DNA of 63,746 bases, filler included, from Reticulomyxa filosa (taxonomy: Eukaryota > Protista > Foraminifera): the NCBI GenBank assembly GCA_000512085.1. It is 25 parts of 25 records of this genome, joined end to end, with 100 filler letters (N's around TTAATTAATTAA, not from the genome) between each part and the next. Parts side by side here need not be neighbours in the genome. Positions count along the whole stretch, not along the records: positions 47,759 to 55,815 come from ASPP01005985.1; 24 more parts are not named here. The stretch is one strand, 5' to 3'. Shown in pieces: positions 47,782 to 55,680 of this stretch (position 1 is its first letter; every line of letters starts with the position of its first letter). A program made the translations under genes and the position numbers. A model generated the notes under the pieces. It made no database searches and had not been told where the DNA came from. It was given only the letters and a program-made list of their open reading frames with translations.

Positions 47782-49554
47782 TTATTGTTTTACCTTTGGC
47801 TTTGGTTTGAGGTTTTTGTTCTTTTTGTCATTTGGTTTTGAGAAGCTACGCTCTTTTTTGTTTGCAGTGACGTCATGCGCCTGATTTGTTTTAGCGTTGC
47901 TTTTCTGTGGATTGTGATCGCGGTAGCCGGGGTAGCCGCCACGCAAGTTGGATAAGCGGCGATTGGAGTGAGCAGGTTGGTTCGAGTTGACAAACGACGA
48001 GTGTTGGGTGTCGCGTTGAGAGTTGAGCGAATGGCTTGGGATGACTTTCAATGAGATGGATTTTTGCAATGGCGGATTGAAATGGATATTCGCAAAAGCT
48101 GTGCGTACAGTGCGATTTGCGGAATAAACCCGTCCATTTGATTCATCGTCAGTATCATTATTATTATCATTATTATTATCATTATCATCATCATCATCGT
48201 CGTCGTCGTCAGCACGACGATGGTTTTTACGATGCGTGGGAGGTGTGGCACCGGCAACAACGTGTGGGATTGGTGCCGTAGTAGACAGTACTGTTGGCAA
48301 GACAAGAGGTGGTGCGGGTGGTAATGGCTTTGCGAGCTCATTGGCATTAGCACTTGCTTTGAGCTTTTTTGAGTTGCCGCTTTGGATAATTCGATGATCA
48401 AACGAGGTACCTTGCAATTGCAATGGATGACGATTCGTTGATTTGTTCGTGGTATATTTGTCACTTTGTGGTGCTTTTGGATTGTTTTTGGCAAAGGGGC
48501 CAATTGCATTGTCATCAAAACTTGGCTGTTGTTGTTGTTGTTGTTGTTGCTGAAGTAGTGTTCTATCTTCCACGTGTTCGACATATCCCTCCTCTTCTTC
48601 ATCTGGCCTGGCAGTCATTGGACCATCTCCCTTTTCACTCATGTCGTCATAAGCAATGTCACTGCCACTCTCGCTGTCGCTTTGATGGTCCTTCTTCATC
48701 ACCACATTCACTGTGCCATGTACGCTACTTCTGCTCTCGTTGCTTGAGTGTCCATTGTTTCCAGTACTTTTCTCATTGTTCATTTGCTTTTTGATCGTCT
48801 TGCGATTGTCATTGTGTGAAGTGTTTGTTGGCTTTGACTTGGGCCCCGATTTTTGTCTTTGTGTTTGTTGATTGGTTGCATTTTTTGATTGCTCTGTGCG
48901 ATCATTCGCTTGAAATGTACGGCCACTTTCCAACCCAGACGATACGTCCTGGCGGATTGACTGACGAGTTTTTTCATTACCTTTGCTCTTATTACTCTTG
49001 TTCACGTTTGATTGATTGCTCTGATTCACTTGTGGATTGCTGGGCATATGCCCGTTCCTTACTTTCATCGATGCGCTTGGATACATTGGCTGTCGCATTT
49101 CTTCGTCGTCGCTGCTTTTATTGTTCCTTTTTTTTTTGCGCACGCTACCTGCTTCAAGAGCGTCGCTTTCATTTACTATACTACCCAGCTGTTGTGTTCT
49201 TTTCAAACTTTCCCCTCTTATTACTATCCCTGGTCGCTTTGGACTCCCATCATTATTTTCAAAGTACACAACATTGCCATCTCCTGGTGGCGTGCTGAAA
49301 TGGTACAATGGTGACGACGGTTGCGGGGCCTGTGTGTAACTCTGACTATCCAGAACTGCTATTGTCATGCTCGTTTCCAGTGATGTCGTCATACTCGAGT
49401 TGGAATACGATGCGTTCACCTTCTTGTTTCGCACGGACTGAGACTTGCTCAGTCCAAACTCCACGCCCGAGTCTTTCGGCATCATCGAATTTGATTGCTG
49501 AGAAATTTGCATATCAGAAGTCAAAACACTTTTTGGCTTTTCTGTGTAAAACAT
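47782..49554 (-). CDS. Large intrinsically disordered S/N/Q/D/K-rich protein fragment
   Basis: 590-codon open frame with polyQ, polyD/N and a Pro-rich patch. No domain; continues past the contig end. Confidence 0.7.
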   Translation of the reverse strand: MFYTEKPKSVLTSDMQISQQSNSMMPKDSGVEFGLSKSQSVRNKKVNASYSNSSMTTSLETSMTIAVLDSQSYTQAPQPSSPLYHFSTPPGDGNVVYFENNDGSPKRPGIVIRGESLKRTQQLGSIVNESDALEAGSVRKKKRNNKSSDDEEMRQPMYPSASMKVRNGHMPSNPQVNQSNQSNVNKSNKSKGNEKTRQSIRQDVSSGLESGRTFQANDRTEQSKNATNQQTQRQKSGPKSKPTNTSHNDNRKTIKKQMNNEKSTGNNGHSSNESRSSVHGTVNVVMKKDHQSDSESGSDIAYDDMSEKGDGPMTARPDEEEEGYVEHVEDRTLLQQQQQQQQQPSFDDNAIGPFAKNNPKAPQSDKYTTNKSTNRHPLQLQGTSFDHRIIQSGNSKKLKASANANELAKPLPPAPPLVLPTVLSTTAPIPHVVAGATPPTHRKNHRRADDDDDDDDDNDNNNDNNNDTDDESNGRVYSANRTVRTAFANIHFNPPLQKSISLKVIPSHSLNSQRDTQHSSFVNSNQPAHSNRRLSNLRGGYPGYRDHNPQKSNAKTNQAHDVTANKKERSFSKPNDKKNKNLKPKPKVKQ

Positions 49555-49981
49555 TTTCCTATGTACAGGATCATTCTACAAAAAAAACTTTTCTTTGCCA
49601 GTCTCCAACGTTGGCCTGTTGCATTTCTTGTTTTTCCATACTATTTTTGAATAATGTTCAACCCTTTAAGCCGTCTGTCATTTGTCAAGAGAAGAAGTGT
49701 TATAAGCAAGGTCTTCATAGATAGAAGAGTTCGTAAATTGATTGAAAATGTTGCTTAAGGCAAAAACGATGTTGATGTTTTTTTTCCACTTTGAGGAGAC
49801 TTTTGATTGTTGTTTTTTTTCCATCCAAGAAAACAAAACTAAGTTATAACTAAACACACACAATAACCCAGAGTTTGCGTCTTAAACTAGGACATCAAAC
49901 ACTCTCACACCCAAAAATGGATCATCAAAAAAAAAAGGTAAAAAATAATAATCGTGTGTGTCATAAAAAAAAATTGTACAC

Positions 49982-50751
49982 TTACGCGTACACCATTTCA
50001 TACCATTGGTCTTTGCCATGTTGTACATTAGATTTGCCTTCTAAAACAAAACCCACTTTTTGATAAAGTGGAACCAAATGCTTTTTGGCCATGAGTCGAA
50101 TGGCATGAATTTCTTTCCTTTCGAGCTTTGGAGCCAATATCTGCAAGTATTTCTTCATAAGAAGTGTTGCCAACTTGTTACGGCGATAGTGCTTGTCAAC
50201 CACCACAGAATGCACGCACAATGTTTTTCCGGACTCAACATGCGCCAATATGCTCTCTTCGGTTAATTTATCTGTTCAAACAGTGTATGGGAGGGGATTA
50301 GTGTAATATATATATTTTTTTCTCTCTCAAACCTATAACACCAATTAAAAAAACAAACAAAACTAGAATTAGCAAGCGTGCCACATACAAAGCCCACAAT
50401 TTGATTGCAATAAGTCAAAACCTTGAAATAGTCGGACGCGTATATGAATCGGTAATAAAGCCTTTCCGGAGGTGCTGCTTCGTCAGGTGGATAGCTTTCA
50501 GTTTCAAGTTCACATATTCTGGGCAGATCTGCTTTCCTCACGGCCCGAACACTTGCGAGTTGCAAATCAATGTGACTTTTTGGGGAAGGGTCCTTTGACA
50601 CGACCTTCACACAATCTTTAGTCTTTACAAAAGCGTTCATAGTTGGGAGTTTCACTAAACAATGGGTGGCTTCCGACTGCAATAACTCACCTAATCCAAA
50701 CGGGGTCTTGATGAGTTGCACAGTCGTATGTGCAGTAGACGAGTCACTTTT
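49982..50751 (-). CDS. GNAT N-acetyltransferase, AANAT/yeast Paa1 (arylalkylamine/polyamine) type; apparently C-terminal exons of the AMP deaminase gene
   Basis: ELETESYPPDEAA, IVGFVCGT, LTEESILAHVESGKTLCVHSVVVDKHYRRNKLATLLM and LVPLYQKVGF..G...HG...WYEM. One intron ~50272-50363. Confidence 0.9.
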
Positions 50752-52123
50752 CTTTTTTTCCCCCCCATTTAAAAAAAAAAAAAAGATTTCATTTGTTGAG
50801 GAGATTCACATGCGTGTATTCAATATAAGTAATTTAATTCATACCTTTGTTGGAGGAGTGACTGATTCTGACTTCTTTTCATCTTCTTGAACATGATCTT
50901 CCATTTCATCTATGAATGAAAGTAATCCTTCGACCATTTCCAAGACACTTTTTTTTTTCGTGTCTTCTCCTTCTTTCGGCTCTTTTTCATGTTTGTCTCC
51001 TTTCCGGTCCCGGACTGTCTTATCTCTACTTCGTCGTTCGTCACGTTCTGGCACTGTTCTCTCATCCGTCGTCAATTCTTTTTTATGTTGGTGTTCTTTT
51101 TGCTCTTTTCGGGGCCGTGGAGAAAGACTACGCGGTGTATGAATTCGTGGTATCCCAACATAATCGCCATTTTCTTTTCCCGTTTTCGTGTCATCAAAGC
51201 TCACATGTTTTTCTTTGGAGTTATCAGAAAGCGATTGTCCTGCGTCTTCTTTTGTCTCCGAGCTTGGGGAATTGGTGCGACTACCGCCTTGAGGGGTCAT
51301 TTGTAACGTTTTCAAAATGCTTGGAGGACGTGATATATTGGCATTTTGAATAAACTTTGGTTTGGGTGAAGGACTTTGTCCTAAGCCAGTCTTTAATATA
51401 TTATGTGTGTATATGTATATGTATATAATGTATGTGTACATATATGAATAAGTATGTTGACGCTTTAATAATACAATAGCTAACACTATGTTTTCTGACA
51501 ACCTTTTGCAAGTTTTGGACTGCTTGTTCTCTTTGTTTCTCTCTTTCTTGTTCTTTCATAAATTCAAAATCAATAGGCAAAAGCGGTCCTTTGTTTGTGG
51601 GGTCGACAGCAGATGTTTTGGCGATGGCAGGAGTCATGGTGTCCAACTTCACCAAGTCATTGGGGAATTCTTCATACGACAGTTTGCGTTTTCTTTCCTC
51701 CAAGTTTTCATCCAACACTTGTCCTGTCTTTTCGTTATATTCACCACGACTGCCCACCTGAGCTCTCTCTTCACGTGCACCTCGAGTGTCATGTTCTTCA
51801 CGAGTACGCTTGCCTTTTGACTGAGTTCCTTGAGCACGGGCAGGATGGTCCTTTCGACTCTTTTTGCCCGAGTGAATGTCCTTGTGATTGTTTATTCGCA
51901 TTGCAAAGACAGAGATCAATCAACATAGTTTGCGTAATCAAAAAGAAAAGAAAGAAAGTAACTGCAGAAGGGGTACTGTTGGCACTGGAGCTGGTGCTCG
52001 AACTGGTGGCTGAAGTTGGAGTCTTTTGCATCTTGGGCGATTTGACAATGGGTTTCACAATGCCGATAATGGGAAGGTCATTCAAACTGACAGGCGTACT
52101 ACACGCGGGCTCAGTTGCAGTGA

Positions 52124-55100
52124 CTACAACACCAGTTGCCACTCCGTCATTATCGCCGCCTTTCGAAGGTTGCACCTCCACTTGTTGAAGTGATTTTGGA
52201 TTGAACTTGATATCATCGCTTTGCTTTTCACTTTTTCCAATTTCTTCAAGTATCTCTTCTTCATCATCACCTCGACCCCGATCTCGATCTTTACTTCCAT
52301 TTTTTTGTAGTTTTCTTGTTCTTCTTCGTCTTCTTCTTCATCCTGGAATTCTTCATATTCAAGTATTTCTTCTTCTGCTTCCTCTTCAATGTCCAAATCG
52401 CTTGCGTGTCGGTCGAGATGCACTTTGGATAAGTCCAAGTTCCCGATTATGGTTGGCTTTGTCCCCTTTTCCATTTTCACAAAATAGTGGGGATAACCTT
52501 CCATTCGAATAAAGTTTTCCTCGTCGCGTAACATCAAATCTCGATAGTCGAGACGCGTATTGGGTACGCTCGTGCGATAAATGTCGTTGCTGTTACTGCC
52601 GCGTAGACCGCAATTTTTTCCTATCCATGACCTCTGTTGAACACAACCACGCGAGTTCGTGACGATTACGCCAACTTTTTTTGTTTTTTTTTTTTTTTTC
52701 GCTTTTTTTTTTTAAAAAAAAAAAAAGACAAATAAAAATAACAAAAATATAAACATTCAAATAACTTTGGTTTCTTCATCCCAATTGGACTGCAACACTG
52801 AGTTTCTGGCAATTTCGCACAAATCAATGGAAGACAGATTAAACACTTGGGCACATATGGAATACTCTTCCAACAATGCGTCTTTGGTGTAGCTATTCCA
52901 ATCATGTGCAAAAAGTGTTTGCATTAACTATGAGAACACACAAAGTTATGTAAAAAAAAAAAAAAAAAACAAAACGAAACTGAATCAACAATGGGTCGTC
53001 GGTTGACAACGCCACATTCAAACCTCTTTTGAAAAAGCTTGGAAATGGGTTTTTGTTGTATTCACAAACTAATATATTGTTTGATAGTGGTGACACGGAA
53101 ACACCAATCTAGTTATTGTGATATTACTTTATGGTTTTTTTGTTTTCTTTTCAAGTTTAGTTCCCCCCTCCCTCCCTCCTTTTTCTCTTCAAGTTGTCAT
53201 ATTATGTTCTGACTGATGCATACACTTGAAAATACCTGATCTAAATAGTATAGATACTGCAACACAGGCGATCTTTTCAACAATATGCCATGGCTGACAG
53301 AATGGGCTTTTGTTTTATTTTGTTTATATTCCCCTCTTTCTCTGTCCAACATTGATATGAATATAATATTTATGCGATATGTTTGTCGGAGAAAAATTTT
53401 TTTAATAAAAAAAAAAAAACAAGTACCCAAAAGATAAGCTGAAGCGAGATGATCAATACTTCCCGCCTCACCACTATGTGGTCGGAATGCAAATGTATTC
53501 ATTCCTCGTTCTTCCCTCAATTTATTCAATTTCACAACGTTTGCCCACAAATAGTACTGATACATACTATGTTCGTCACACAAACACAACCAAAGCACTT
53601 TCATGTTTTATTGGTTTGTTTCCCTTTTCTTGTTGCAACGTAACATATATGGAGGATTCGATTCGTTGGTCCAATCGTCAGGGTCATAACGCTTGCCGAT
53701 TCGTGAATCGTGCACTGATTCATCATCTACACTATCAAACCCGACTACCGTTTGCAAAAATTGATGCAACTATTTGCACGCATAATACCACATTATATAT
53801 TTATTTTTCTCATTATTAATCATTATTATTATTATGGGAAAAAAAAAAAAACAAACTGCAGGATTCGAACTCGGATCAATAGTGACTTGAAACAAAGGCA
53901 AAAAGATGTTTTCCAACATTTGACCAAAAGATTGCAATAACCCACGAGAACGATAGACGTGATATAATCGTGGTATTTGGATGACCCATCGTACATGTTC
54001 GGATTGTAATTTGTATTGGCAAATCCATTCTGCCAACATTTGCCATTCTTCTGACTTTGTTCCGTAAATGGACAAACGACTCTCCAGTTTGGTATACTTG
54101 CTCCAATCCAAGTCCGCAAACACTTCTTGCGTTAACTCTGCAAAATAACGTCCCTTTATCACATTGTCCACTTCCAAAAAGATCTGTCGAAATTCAGATA
54201 GTCCCACGGGGTTGTATTTTAAGCTGAATTTATCAAACCTCTCGAATGTGCTTCGTTCCGCATGTCTTTGTGTGTGTGTTTGTTTATGTATTAGAATAGA
54301 GAAATTGCAAGGATATAACAAAAAAGGGGAAGCAACATTTCAAAAAAAAGACTCTTGTGTAACACTTTGGAAGGAAAAAAAAAAAACTTAGATTTTGTTT
54401 AATTTGTGCGTATTCTGTTTTGTGTCGTGTATTTTTCTCTCCACTCAACACGTCCAACAAAGTAATGGATAAATCATCCGGACTAATGCCAATATTGTCA
54501 AATACCTCTTTCAAAGTATGACTCTTGCCATTTTCATCCTTTGTCACAACTGTGTCTGGCTCTTTCCTTAATTTGTCACGCATGAATGACAGCAAATGTT
54601 TCTGATTGTCCAGTATAGATTGTGTAAATACATATATTTGTGTCTTATATCTACTTTACTTCCAAAAAAAAAATAAATAAATAAATAAATTTGATTGACA
54701 CAAATAAATCAAAGTTGGTCCAAAAGTATAAAGAGCAAGTGGCGTCGATCTACACAAAACTTGATGCATACACGCGGAATGATGAACATGATTATCGACT
54801 TTTCGAATGTTATACAAGTCCCTGTAAGGTACCTGTCGACATTCCTTCAATTCGATTTCGTCGTTTAGTAGCAAGTGCATATCAAACCGCGCTTCTAGCA
54901 TTTGCAATCGCCGATAGCCTTTCATTTCACCCATCAAAAGCAAAGAGATCCATTTTTTAAAAAGTAATATATAAATAAAGCACTTTTTAATGTGGGGCGT
55001 AGAGTGTGGAGTGTGCAATGTGTATGTGTGTTGTACGTATGTATGTGTCCAGTGTGTGGACTTGATTGATTACAGAAAAAAAAAAAGGAGAAGACATAGA

Positions 55101-55680
55101 TAAAGAGAAGAAAGAAGAAGAAGAAGAAAAAAAAAAAAATCACATACACAGCGTCTTGGCAGGACCAAAAGTGGTCAAGGACATTACATCGTTGACATCT
55201 TGTAAAAACTCGGAAAAAGTGGGAATTTCTTCAAATTTCAGTTCTGGCTCTTGCGTGGCCATATTCAGCACATGTGCGGTGCCATGTTTGAATTTGGCAG
55301 TCCATTCGTGCAACAGACTTTCCGGCAGGTTTTCGGTCACTTCGTCCAATTGGACATCGCTTTTCAAAGCACCTTTCATTTTAATGTCCATGTTTGCATG
55401 TGTTTGTTTGTAACCCTCGCGTAGGCAACATCACTCACTCCCTTTTTGTCATCTCCTCCCTCTTTTGCCCCCTCTTCAAATAGACATGTGTTTATATGCG
55501 TGGGCCCCCCCCCCATGGGTGGGGTCCAAGCCAACCGACTGACAAAAAAAAAAAAAAGATAGAATCAATTGCATACCAACATGTCCTCGATATATCTCTT
55601 TCATTGGTCTGTAGACATACTTGCAACGCAATCGACGGCAATGATCAATTTTCTTACAAGCTTCCACGCGATTGAGGTTC
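52124..55680 (-). CDS. AMPD: AMP deaminase, multi-exon, 5' truncated, with long C-terminal extension
   Basis: [10 protein letters not shown] (Zn HxH), [71 protein letters not shown] and [11 protein letters not shown]. Confidence 0.96.

Follow-up and report, generated by a model that had tools for sequence, protein, structure and literature searches.

An AMP deaminase joined to an AANAT/Paa1-type acetyltransferase in Reticulomyxa filosa and other foraminifera

Introduction

AMP deaminase (AMPD) helps to stabilise the adenylate energy charge and is usually a chain with a single enzyme in it. A locus of the foraminifer Reticulomyxa filosa raises the question of whether this always holds: on the minus strand of contig ASPP01005985.1 (assembly GCA_000512085.1; annotated protein RFI_07558), AMPD exons are followed by exons for an acetyltransferase of the GNAT type. 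Do they form one gene, what would its product do, and is the present copy still read through? The contig makes up the entire segment that holds the gene within our window, the whole stretch of 63,746 nucleotides (nt) that was analysed. An earlier note on this DNA had proposed a single AMPD-linker-GNAT gene and knew of no described AMPD-GNAT fusion; our literature search, covering few subscription journals, found no description of one either. Having searched the spliced gene exon by exon (Pfam, PDB, homologs and trees), we have very little doubt that the fused architecture is real: two known enzyme families are joined as domains of one protein, a combination observed to date in foraminifera alone.

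Results

The proposal of one gene is borne out by an R. filosa paralog with an open frame past its AMPD domain, by transcript-derived fusions from Nonionella and Ammonia, and by a genomic AMPD-GNAT junction within a single exon. The gene occupies the minus strand of ASPP01005985.1 between 55680 and 49982, in 15 exons with about 1,304 visible codons; its 5' end and start codon lie off the contig. Every intron is GT-AG, and the exon phases are consistent over the 15 exons with the sole exception of exon 11 (52633-51963). The order of domains is AMPD, a low-complexity linker of ~500-550 residues, an SH3-like barrel and an AANAT/Paa1-type GNAT. Searched one at a time, AMPD exons match PF19326 between profile positions 91 and 625 (of 630), the other exons of this half aligning to AMPDs, and exon 15 matches GNAT families above the Pfam cut-off. 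The features are the following.

55577-55680, minus strand: first exon on the contig, from the N-terminal region of the AMPD (phases; by eye, its helix and GH motif look like those of foraminiferal AMPDs)
55148-55372, minus strand: AMPD exon 2 (PF19326 91-146; phases)
54761-54918, minus strand: AMPD exon 3 with the zinc-binding HxH (DNHVH, ~54796-54782; alignment and phases)
54450-54601, minus strand: AMPD exon 4 (phases; aligns to AMPDs)
53857-54265, minus strand: AMPD exon 5, the core, with KFSLKY and FLEVDN (PF19326 248-389, E 6e-61)
53645-53769, minus strand: AMPD exon 6, GFDSVDDES (motif and phases)
53427-53566, minus strand: AMPD exon 7, RPHSGEAG with the zinc His and catalytic Glu (Pfam and alignment)
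53236-53306, minus strand: AMPD exon 8, VSHGI (phases and alignment)
52981-53108, minus strand: AMPD exon 9, STDDPLL with the zinc Asp (Pfam and alignment)
52766-52892, minus strand: AMPD exon 10 (Pfam and phases)
51963-52633, minus strand: exon 11, with the AMPD end (first ~43 codons; PF19326 584-625), an acidic tract and a Ser/Thr/Pro-rich linker; 671 nt, one base short
52300-52337, minus strand: interval of the frame break, in the A7 run 52306-52300 or the A4 run 52314-52311 (paralog comparison and codon log-odds)
51881-51962, minus strand: linker intron 1, phase 0, 82 nt (matches the phase 0 intron L002:2182-2306 of the paralog)
51503-51880, minus strand: exon 12, charged linker segment with the basic cluster RKRKLS (92/122 residues identical to the paralog; non-synonymous divergence, dN, 0.149; synonymous divergence, dS, 1.6)
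51391-51502, minus strand: linker intron 2, phase 0, 112 nt (same position in the paralog, L002:2679-2763)
50845-51390, minus strand: exon 13, Ser-Pro/Arg-rich and then charged linker (67/122 identical to the paralog)
50752-50844, minus strand: linker intron 3, phase 0, 93 nt (the paralog intron in this region is phase 1)
50584-50727, minus strand: SH3-like five-stranded barrel, TPFGxG module, in exon 14 (50751-50364; fold prediction)
50364-50559, minus strand: N-terminal half of the GNAT with YPPDEAA, in exon 14 (alignment)
49982-50271, minus strand: exon 15, C-terminal half of the GNAT (CVHSVVV, motif A, HGKDQWYEM) and the stop (Pfam; stop at the same position as in the paralog)

The four linker and GNAT exons and the three linker introns lie where the earlier note had placed them, with GT-AG borders and phase 0 throughout. 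Exons 51880-51503, 51390-50845 and 50751-50364 are stop-free, and none of the three linker introns departs in length, AT content (68-76%) or splice sites (GTT or GTA donors) from the range set by the 11 introns that homology fixes. The linker had been taken for ~500 disordered residues; the length stands, but it is not disordered throughout, since exon 12 is conserved like the AMPD core and an SH3-like barrel sits at 50727-50584. The NCBI annotation splits the gene into four models, namely AMPD fragments of 420 and 234 residues, a 136-residue open reading frame (ORF), and a 540-residue protein ending in the GNAT, which starts at ATG 51901 and joins the last four exons to one another, not the AMPD to them.

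Taken by domain, the closest AMPD match is another R. filosa protein (79% identical), whose contig (L002) holds AMPD, linker, barrel and GNAT in identical order. The last AMPD exon of this paralog (L002:1708-2181) is a single open frame, and its linker introns 1 and 2 are both of phase 0 and in corresponding positions, with a third of phase 1. Its own NCBI model joins the C-terminal part of the AMPD to linker and barrel and splits elsewhere, and there is no in-frame ATG where the 540-residue model of the present copy starts. Synonymous sites between the two copies are near saturation (proportion of synonymous differences, pS, 0.66-0.81), while dN is 0.162 in the AMPD core and 0.149 in exon 12, with 0.36 in exon 13 and 0.27 and 0.25 in the GNAT exons. 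With synonymous sites near saturation and amino-acid change low, we conclude that the linker is coding sequence under selection and that the layout predates the duplication. Exon 12 (L002:2307-2678 in the paralog) looks low-complexity and charged, and is conserved as much as the AMPD core; judged from these rates, it is under strong purifying selection. It matches no known family (Pfam, Atlas), and its RKRKLS cluster could serve as a nuclear localisation or kinase site. The linker of the Nonionella fusion P0161, described below, also has a basic cluster.

The same fusion occurs in other foraminifera. Among the AMPD matches, P0085 and P0132 also match both GNAT exons, and a profile of these two retrieved P0160 and P0161; in EukProt, P0161 and P0132 are listed under Nonionella stella, and P0160 under Ammonia sp. 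P0161 consists of an AMPD, an acidic linker of ~160 residues, two TPxG barrels and a full GNAT. P0085, a single intronless ORF (L003), is the Ammonia protein of P0160 minus the assembly duplications, so it does not represent an independent species. Linkers are short in both P0132 and P0085, and range from ~25 to ~550 residues across the fusions. The fusion is present in genomic DNA besides transcriptomes: Tara Oceans genomic contig L008 has an exon in which a single frame holds the final AMPD helix (FRYLLLSEERHFVES) and the GNAT, with ~50 codons between them, and in environmental contigs L005 and L006 barrel and GNAT lie within one exon, these environmental contigs being assigned to foraminifera by similarity only. 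We reject an assembly chimera, because the fusion recurs in two contigs, in two transcriptomes and in an exon of environmental origin. Just four of the 234 AMPD-like proteins fetched (P0085, P0132, P0160 and P0161) carry the GNAT, with no non-foraminiferal fusion among the 234, and a metagenome scan found an AMPD or barrel near 0 of 80 GNAT loci; both samples are biased toward the query, which leaves absence elsewhere unproven.

Some transcriptome entries contain artefacts: P0160 has internal duplications, and Bolivina isoforms (among P0164, P0166, P0275 and P0278) mix halves of two AMPD paralogs. The Nonionella and Bolivina species labels are soft because of cross-contamination and chimeric isoforms in both sets. 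The c-type AMPD of Bolivina ends in a poly-Lys run and is probably truncated ahead of its GNAT.

Reticulomyxa and the rotaliids are distant within Foraminifera. A separate tree for each GNAT exon placed all fused GNATs in one group (Shimodaira-Hasegawa-like approximate likelihood ratio test, SH-aLRT, 93 and 95). This clade also includes a stand-alone GNAT from a compact genome (P0292, L004), which represents either the pre-fusion state or a fission. For the AMPD, nine exons were placed one by one on a backbone tree: seven of the nine went with most weight into the foraminiferal b/c group, and the best summed placement fell to the stem of the fused rotaliid AMPD clade, ahead of the next branch by 12.3 log-likelihood units and of the unfused b-type by 16-19. 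That the fusion arose once, before the split of Reticulomyxa and rotaliids, is thus the simplest reading, supported though not proven. It has to be weighed against the individual placement of exons 5 and 6 elsewhere, against a quick AMPD tree that sets the R. filosa pair apart from the fused rotaliid clade on a long branch, and against the linkers, for the Reticulomyxa linker bears no significant similarity to that of Nonionella and homology of the two was rejected on this ground. The quick tree used the NCBI partial model P0009 with intron-derived stretches dropped, and under half of the columns; we gave the exon-wise placement more weight, as it draws on a larger part of the domain and as shared derived motifs are seen in the alignment.

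The stand-alone GNAT at L004:1680-2240 has a Gemin7 gene on one side and another ORF on the other; its contig is eukaryotic and gene-dense, and the end of this contig repeats part of the GNAT.

The AMPD half resembles eukaryotic AMPD (EC 3.5.4.6; PF19326, TIGR01429; Arabidopsis FAC1, PDB 2A3L; human AMPD2), with the same full catalytic barrel and the HxH, RPHxGExG, SHG and STDDP motifs. The Nonionella ortholog P0161 matches 2A3L at E 1.6e-190 and scores 765 against the TIGR01429 equivalog cut-off of 726. Known AMPDs vary mainly at the N-terminus, whereas the foraminiferal fusion carries a long C-terminal extension with an SH3-like barrel and a second enzyme. Unfused AMPDs are also retained in foraminifera, with a C-terminal hydrophobic segment (P0176 and P0173) or other tails (P0167 and Bolivina b-type); the C-terminal modules seem to differ among foraminiferal AMPDs. 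In the present copy, the alignment shows the zinc ligands (HxH, the His of RPH and the Asp of STDD) and the catalytic Glu and His, so the earlier description of the AMPD motifs as intact holds for these residues, but not for two conserved positions close by (KFSLKY and FLEVDN, where the paralog keeps KFNLKY and FLK). Both belong to the phosphate/ribose-site motifs KFxxKY and FLK: KFSLKY retains both Lys and the Tyr, while FLK has become FLE, with Glu at a near-invariant Lys. By its spacing from the KFxxKY motif, this is the position of ice-worm K188E, which is predicted to lower AMPD activity (PMC3042610).

For the GNAT half, the likeness to Paa1/AANAT proposed earlier was supported by the sequence of exon 15, whose five best PDB matches by phmmer are all AANAT, and by fold, in that a predicted model of the P0161 GNAT from Nonionella (pLDDT 82) has sheep AANAT as its best match (Z 24.6 vs 20.2 for the next). 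This model shares the fold of vertebrate AANAT (PDB 1CJW/1KUV; root-mean-square deviation 2.4 over 163 residues, 18% identity in the structural alignment), but the foraminiferal GNAT has only the second His of the vertebrate pair (CVHSV vs AHLHAL). Non-vertebrate AANATs have a single His compared with the vertebrate catalytic His pair (PMC2897805). Indeed, the family motifs YPxDEAA, CxHSV with one His and HGxDxW are present in the alignment of the present GNAT, which has YPxDEAA, GFVCGT, CxHSV, HGxDxWxEM and, with the substitution given below, motif A in common with stand-alone protist and bacterial relatives. These relatives are stand-alone proteins of ~160-290 residues (the search was restricted to such sizes), whereas the foraminiferal clade is AMPD-fused and has an RFI(F/Y)A signature. 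Motif A (consensus R/QxxGxG/A) reads RRNKLA in the present copy and RRHKFG in the paralog, and Lys in place of its first Gly also occurs in some stand-alone relatives (P0298, P0306). NCBIfam cut-offs for SpeG/PaiA/SSAT-type and RimI enzymes were not reached (PaiA 17 vs 250; RimI 26 vs 86), and a length-limited homolog search with exon 14 alone gave no match. Paa1 uses both polyamines and arylalkylamines as acetyl acceptors (PMC10220653). Polyamines are plausible substrates of the GNAT, since the thermospermine synthase of R. filosa is functional (PMC12803844) and putrescine is common to three intertidal foraminifera (PMC12605782).

Ahead of the GNAT, the TPxG module, which was absent from the earlier note, is predicted to fold as an SH3-like five-stranded barrel, also found in Nonionella (two copies) and on an environmental contig. 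It matches KOW/Tudor/SH3 barrels (Spt5 KOW, PHF19 Tudor and the integrase C-terminal domain) at Z 5-6.4, with an Atlas TM of ~0.7-0.78 and many folds tied. No family-level Pfam or PDB profile match was significant, and an Atlas feature similarity of 0.76 to Tudor/Agenet is a lead only.

Discussion

What would such a chain do? From the observed architecture, homology, selection and motif state we infer enzyme activity, substrate, oligomeric state and purpose, and lean slightly toward a two-enzyme chain with independent tethered sites and loose co-regulation as the best overall explanation; it is reasonably likely that both sites are active and loosely co-regulated. AMPD, which deaminates AMP and so stabilises the energy charge, assembles into dimers or tetramers (PMC6164516), and a Plasmodium AMPD with GFP at its C-terminus still complements yeast (10.1101/447789). 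The N-terminal AMPD would convert AMP to IMP and ammonia, buffering the adenylate energy charge, and a flexible tether and the small SH3-like barrel would connect it to the AANAT/Paa1-type acetyltransferase, which would move acetyl from acetyl-CoA to amines, most likely polyamines or arylalkylamines. The two active sites would work independently while being made, placed and degraded together; an AMPD oligomer would display several GNATs, and any cross-regulation would be local and loose. Polyamine acetylation might in this way be coupled to adenylate control. Substrate channelling was rejected as unlikely, because the two enzymes share no metabolite and the tether varies ~20-fold in length, from ~25 to ~550 residues.

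Several observations tell against two working sites. In P0132 from Nonionella, the AMPD zinc and catalytic residues are lost (DNNIH, RPQCGESG, INYGI, SSDNP) and GNAT motif A is kept; in P0085 from Ammonia, all AMPD motifs are kept, motif A is shortened, and the DEAA and HSV motifs are gone. Two of the three distinct rotaliid full-length fusions have thus lost key residues in one domain, and two active sites are therefore not required. In the present copy, the Lys-to-Glu change at the reported ice-worm K188E position would, as predicted there, lower activity, and the Lys that replaces Gly in motif A may bear similarly on the GNAT.

The half-degenerate paralogs figure differently if the fusion is a sensor-effector device, an idea that we regard as possible though doubtful. 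Polyamines or acyl-CoA at the GNAT would tune AMP deamination, AMP or ATP at the AMPD barrel would tune acetylation, and the half-degenerate paralogs would be specialised sensors or regulatory subunits of mixed oligomers. Such a device would fit the reciprocal decay with the domain itself kept (AMPD lost in P0132, GNAT eroded in P0085, both with short linkers) and the allosteric response of AMPD to ATP, GTP and phosphate; polyamines activate, and fatty acyl-CoA inhibits, yeast and mammalian AMPD. The Reticulomyxa linker of ~550 residues, however, speaks against a fixed interface, and we found no mention of polyamine effects on AMPD in the AMPD literature searched. It is similarly tentative that the AMPD-GNAT chain acts as a metabolic switch tying adenylate breakdown to polyamine and acetyl-CoA status, with paralogs in which one domain has lost catalysis and serves as a sensor; if true, energy-charge control and polyamine acetylation would be connected directly, at the level of the protein. 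Foraminifera are known for surviving anoxia.

In the present copy, the one-base deficit interrupts the frame of exon 11. The earlier note had ascribed this break to one missing A in the A7 run; the deficit of a single base stands, but it can be placed no more closely than the interval 52337-52300, where the A4 run fits equally well. In the shifted frame, 179 codons follow the break without a stop and are coding-like (codon log-odds +11.1 vs -5.7 for the unshifted frame), and NGSKDRD in this frame corresponds to RGSKDKD at the equivalent place in the paralog. The segment that would be intergenic if the AMPD ended at 52124 has 52% GC, vs 31% past the GNAT stop. The break is most likely a homopolymer or sequencing error, and the copy on ASPP01005985.1 is probably read full-length, as judged from its sequence. 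Were the missing base real, the family would be fused and this copy not: its AMPD would stop at 52124 or belong to a weakening duplicate, and its GNAT half would be reached rarely, through ribosome slip-back on the A-run or a cryptic intron, or never. The contig sequence as assembled favours this, as do the copy-specific N>S and K>E changes near the AMP site, a second, intact-looking copy in the genome, and frame-restoring GT-AG pairs (e.g. 52294-52224 and 52294-52206, with a GTAAAG donor). The coding-like shifted frame with its GSKD match and the stop-free downstream exons with low dN argue otherwise, and we consider such a broken copy unlikely. The cryptic intron itself was rejected: both candidates have 18% T and 31-34% G, outside the range of the real introns (19-53% T, 10-28% G), and either would delete the conserved GSKD stretch.

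That there are two adjacent genes, an AMPD and a separate 540-residue GNAT protein from ATG 51901, as in the NCBI models, is very improbable, for this in-frame ATG 21 nt upstream of exon 12 and the stand-alone member of the same GNAT clade (L004) are outweighed by a paralog that lacks the ATG and has a model joining the AMPD C-terminal part to linker and barrel, by a coding-like shifted frame that reaches, stop-free, within 62 nt of ATG 51901, and by transcript-derived and single-exon fusions in other foraminifera.

Naked freshwater and calcareous marine foraminifera have both kept the fusion, which suggests that purine catabolism and amine acetylation are functionally linked. P0161 with both sites intact, and P0132 and P0085 with one half degenerate, form a natural test set, and the fusion is a candidate foraminiferal marker. 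The division of one gene among four models indicates that the R. filosa annotation hides multi-domain genes.

Neighbouring genes and further observations

Downstream of the GNAT, an NCBI-annotated ORF of 590 residues on the minus strand (47782-49554) is low-complexity, with Ser/Asn/Gln/Asp tracts and no Pfam match, and may have an earlier exon with an ATG near 49639. A perfect GTAAGT donor lies partly across the GNAT stop codon (49985-49980, minus strand), with a T-rich stretch after it; splicing past the stop seems unlikely because the paralog stops at the same codon. We rejected a GNAT that runs on into the 590-residue ORF, given that the stop is conserved with the paralog and the neighbour of the paralog differs. 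This neighbour, L002:4880-5838 (minus strand), is an ankyrin-repeat gene on the opposite strand to the paralog, and synteny between the copies is therefore lost beyond the fusion gene. An Rfam scan of the contig gave no match, and the repeats found were low-complexity only.

Among other AMPDs, the unfused foraminiferal-type P0167 (L089:2-3442) has a C-terminal beta-rich region without a Pfam match and ends in a CaaX-like CLIM. The amoebozoan proteins P0005, P0162, P0165 and P0013 (Soliformovum, Acanthamoeba, Physarum and Pelomyxa; 1,240-1,350 residues) appear to have tandem AMPD domains, two AMPD-matched stretches being observed in P0005, P0013 and P0162.

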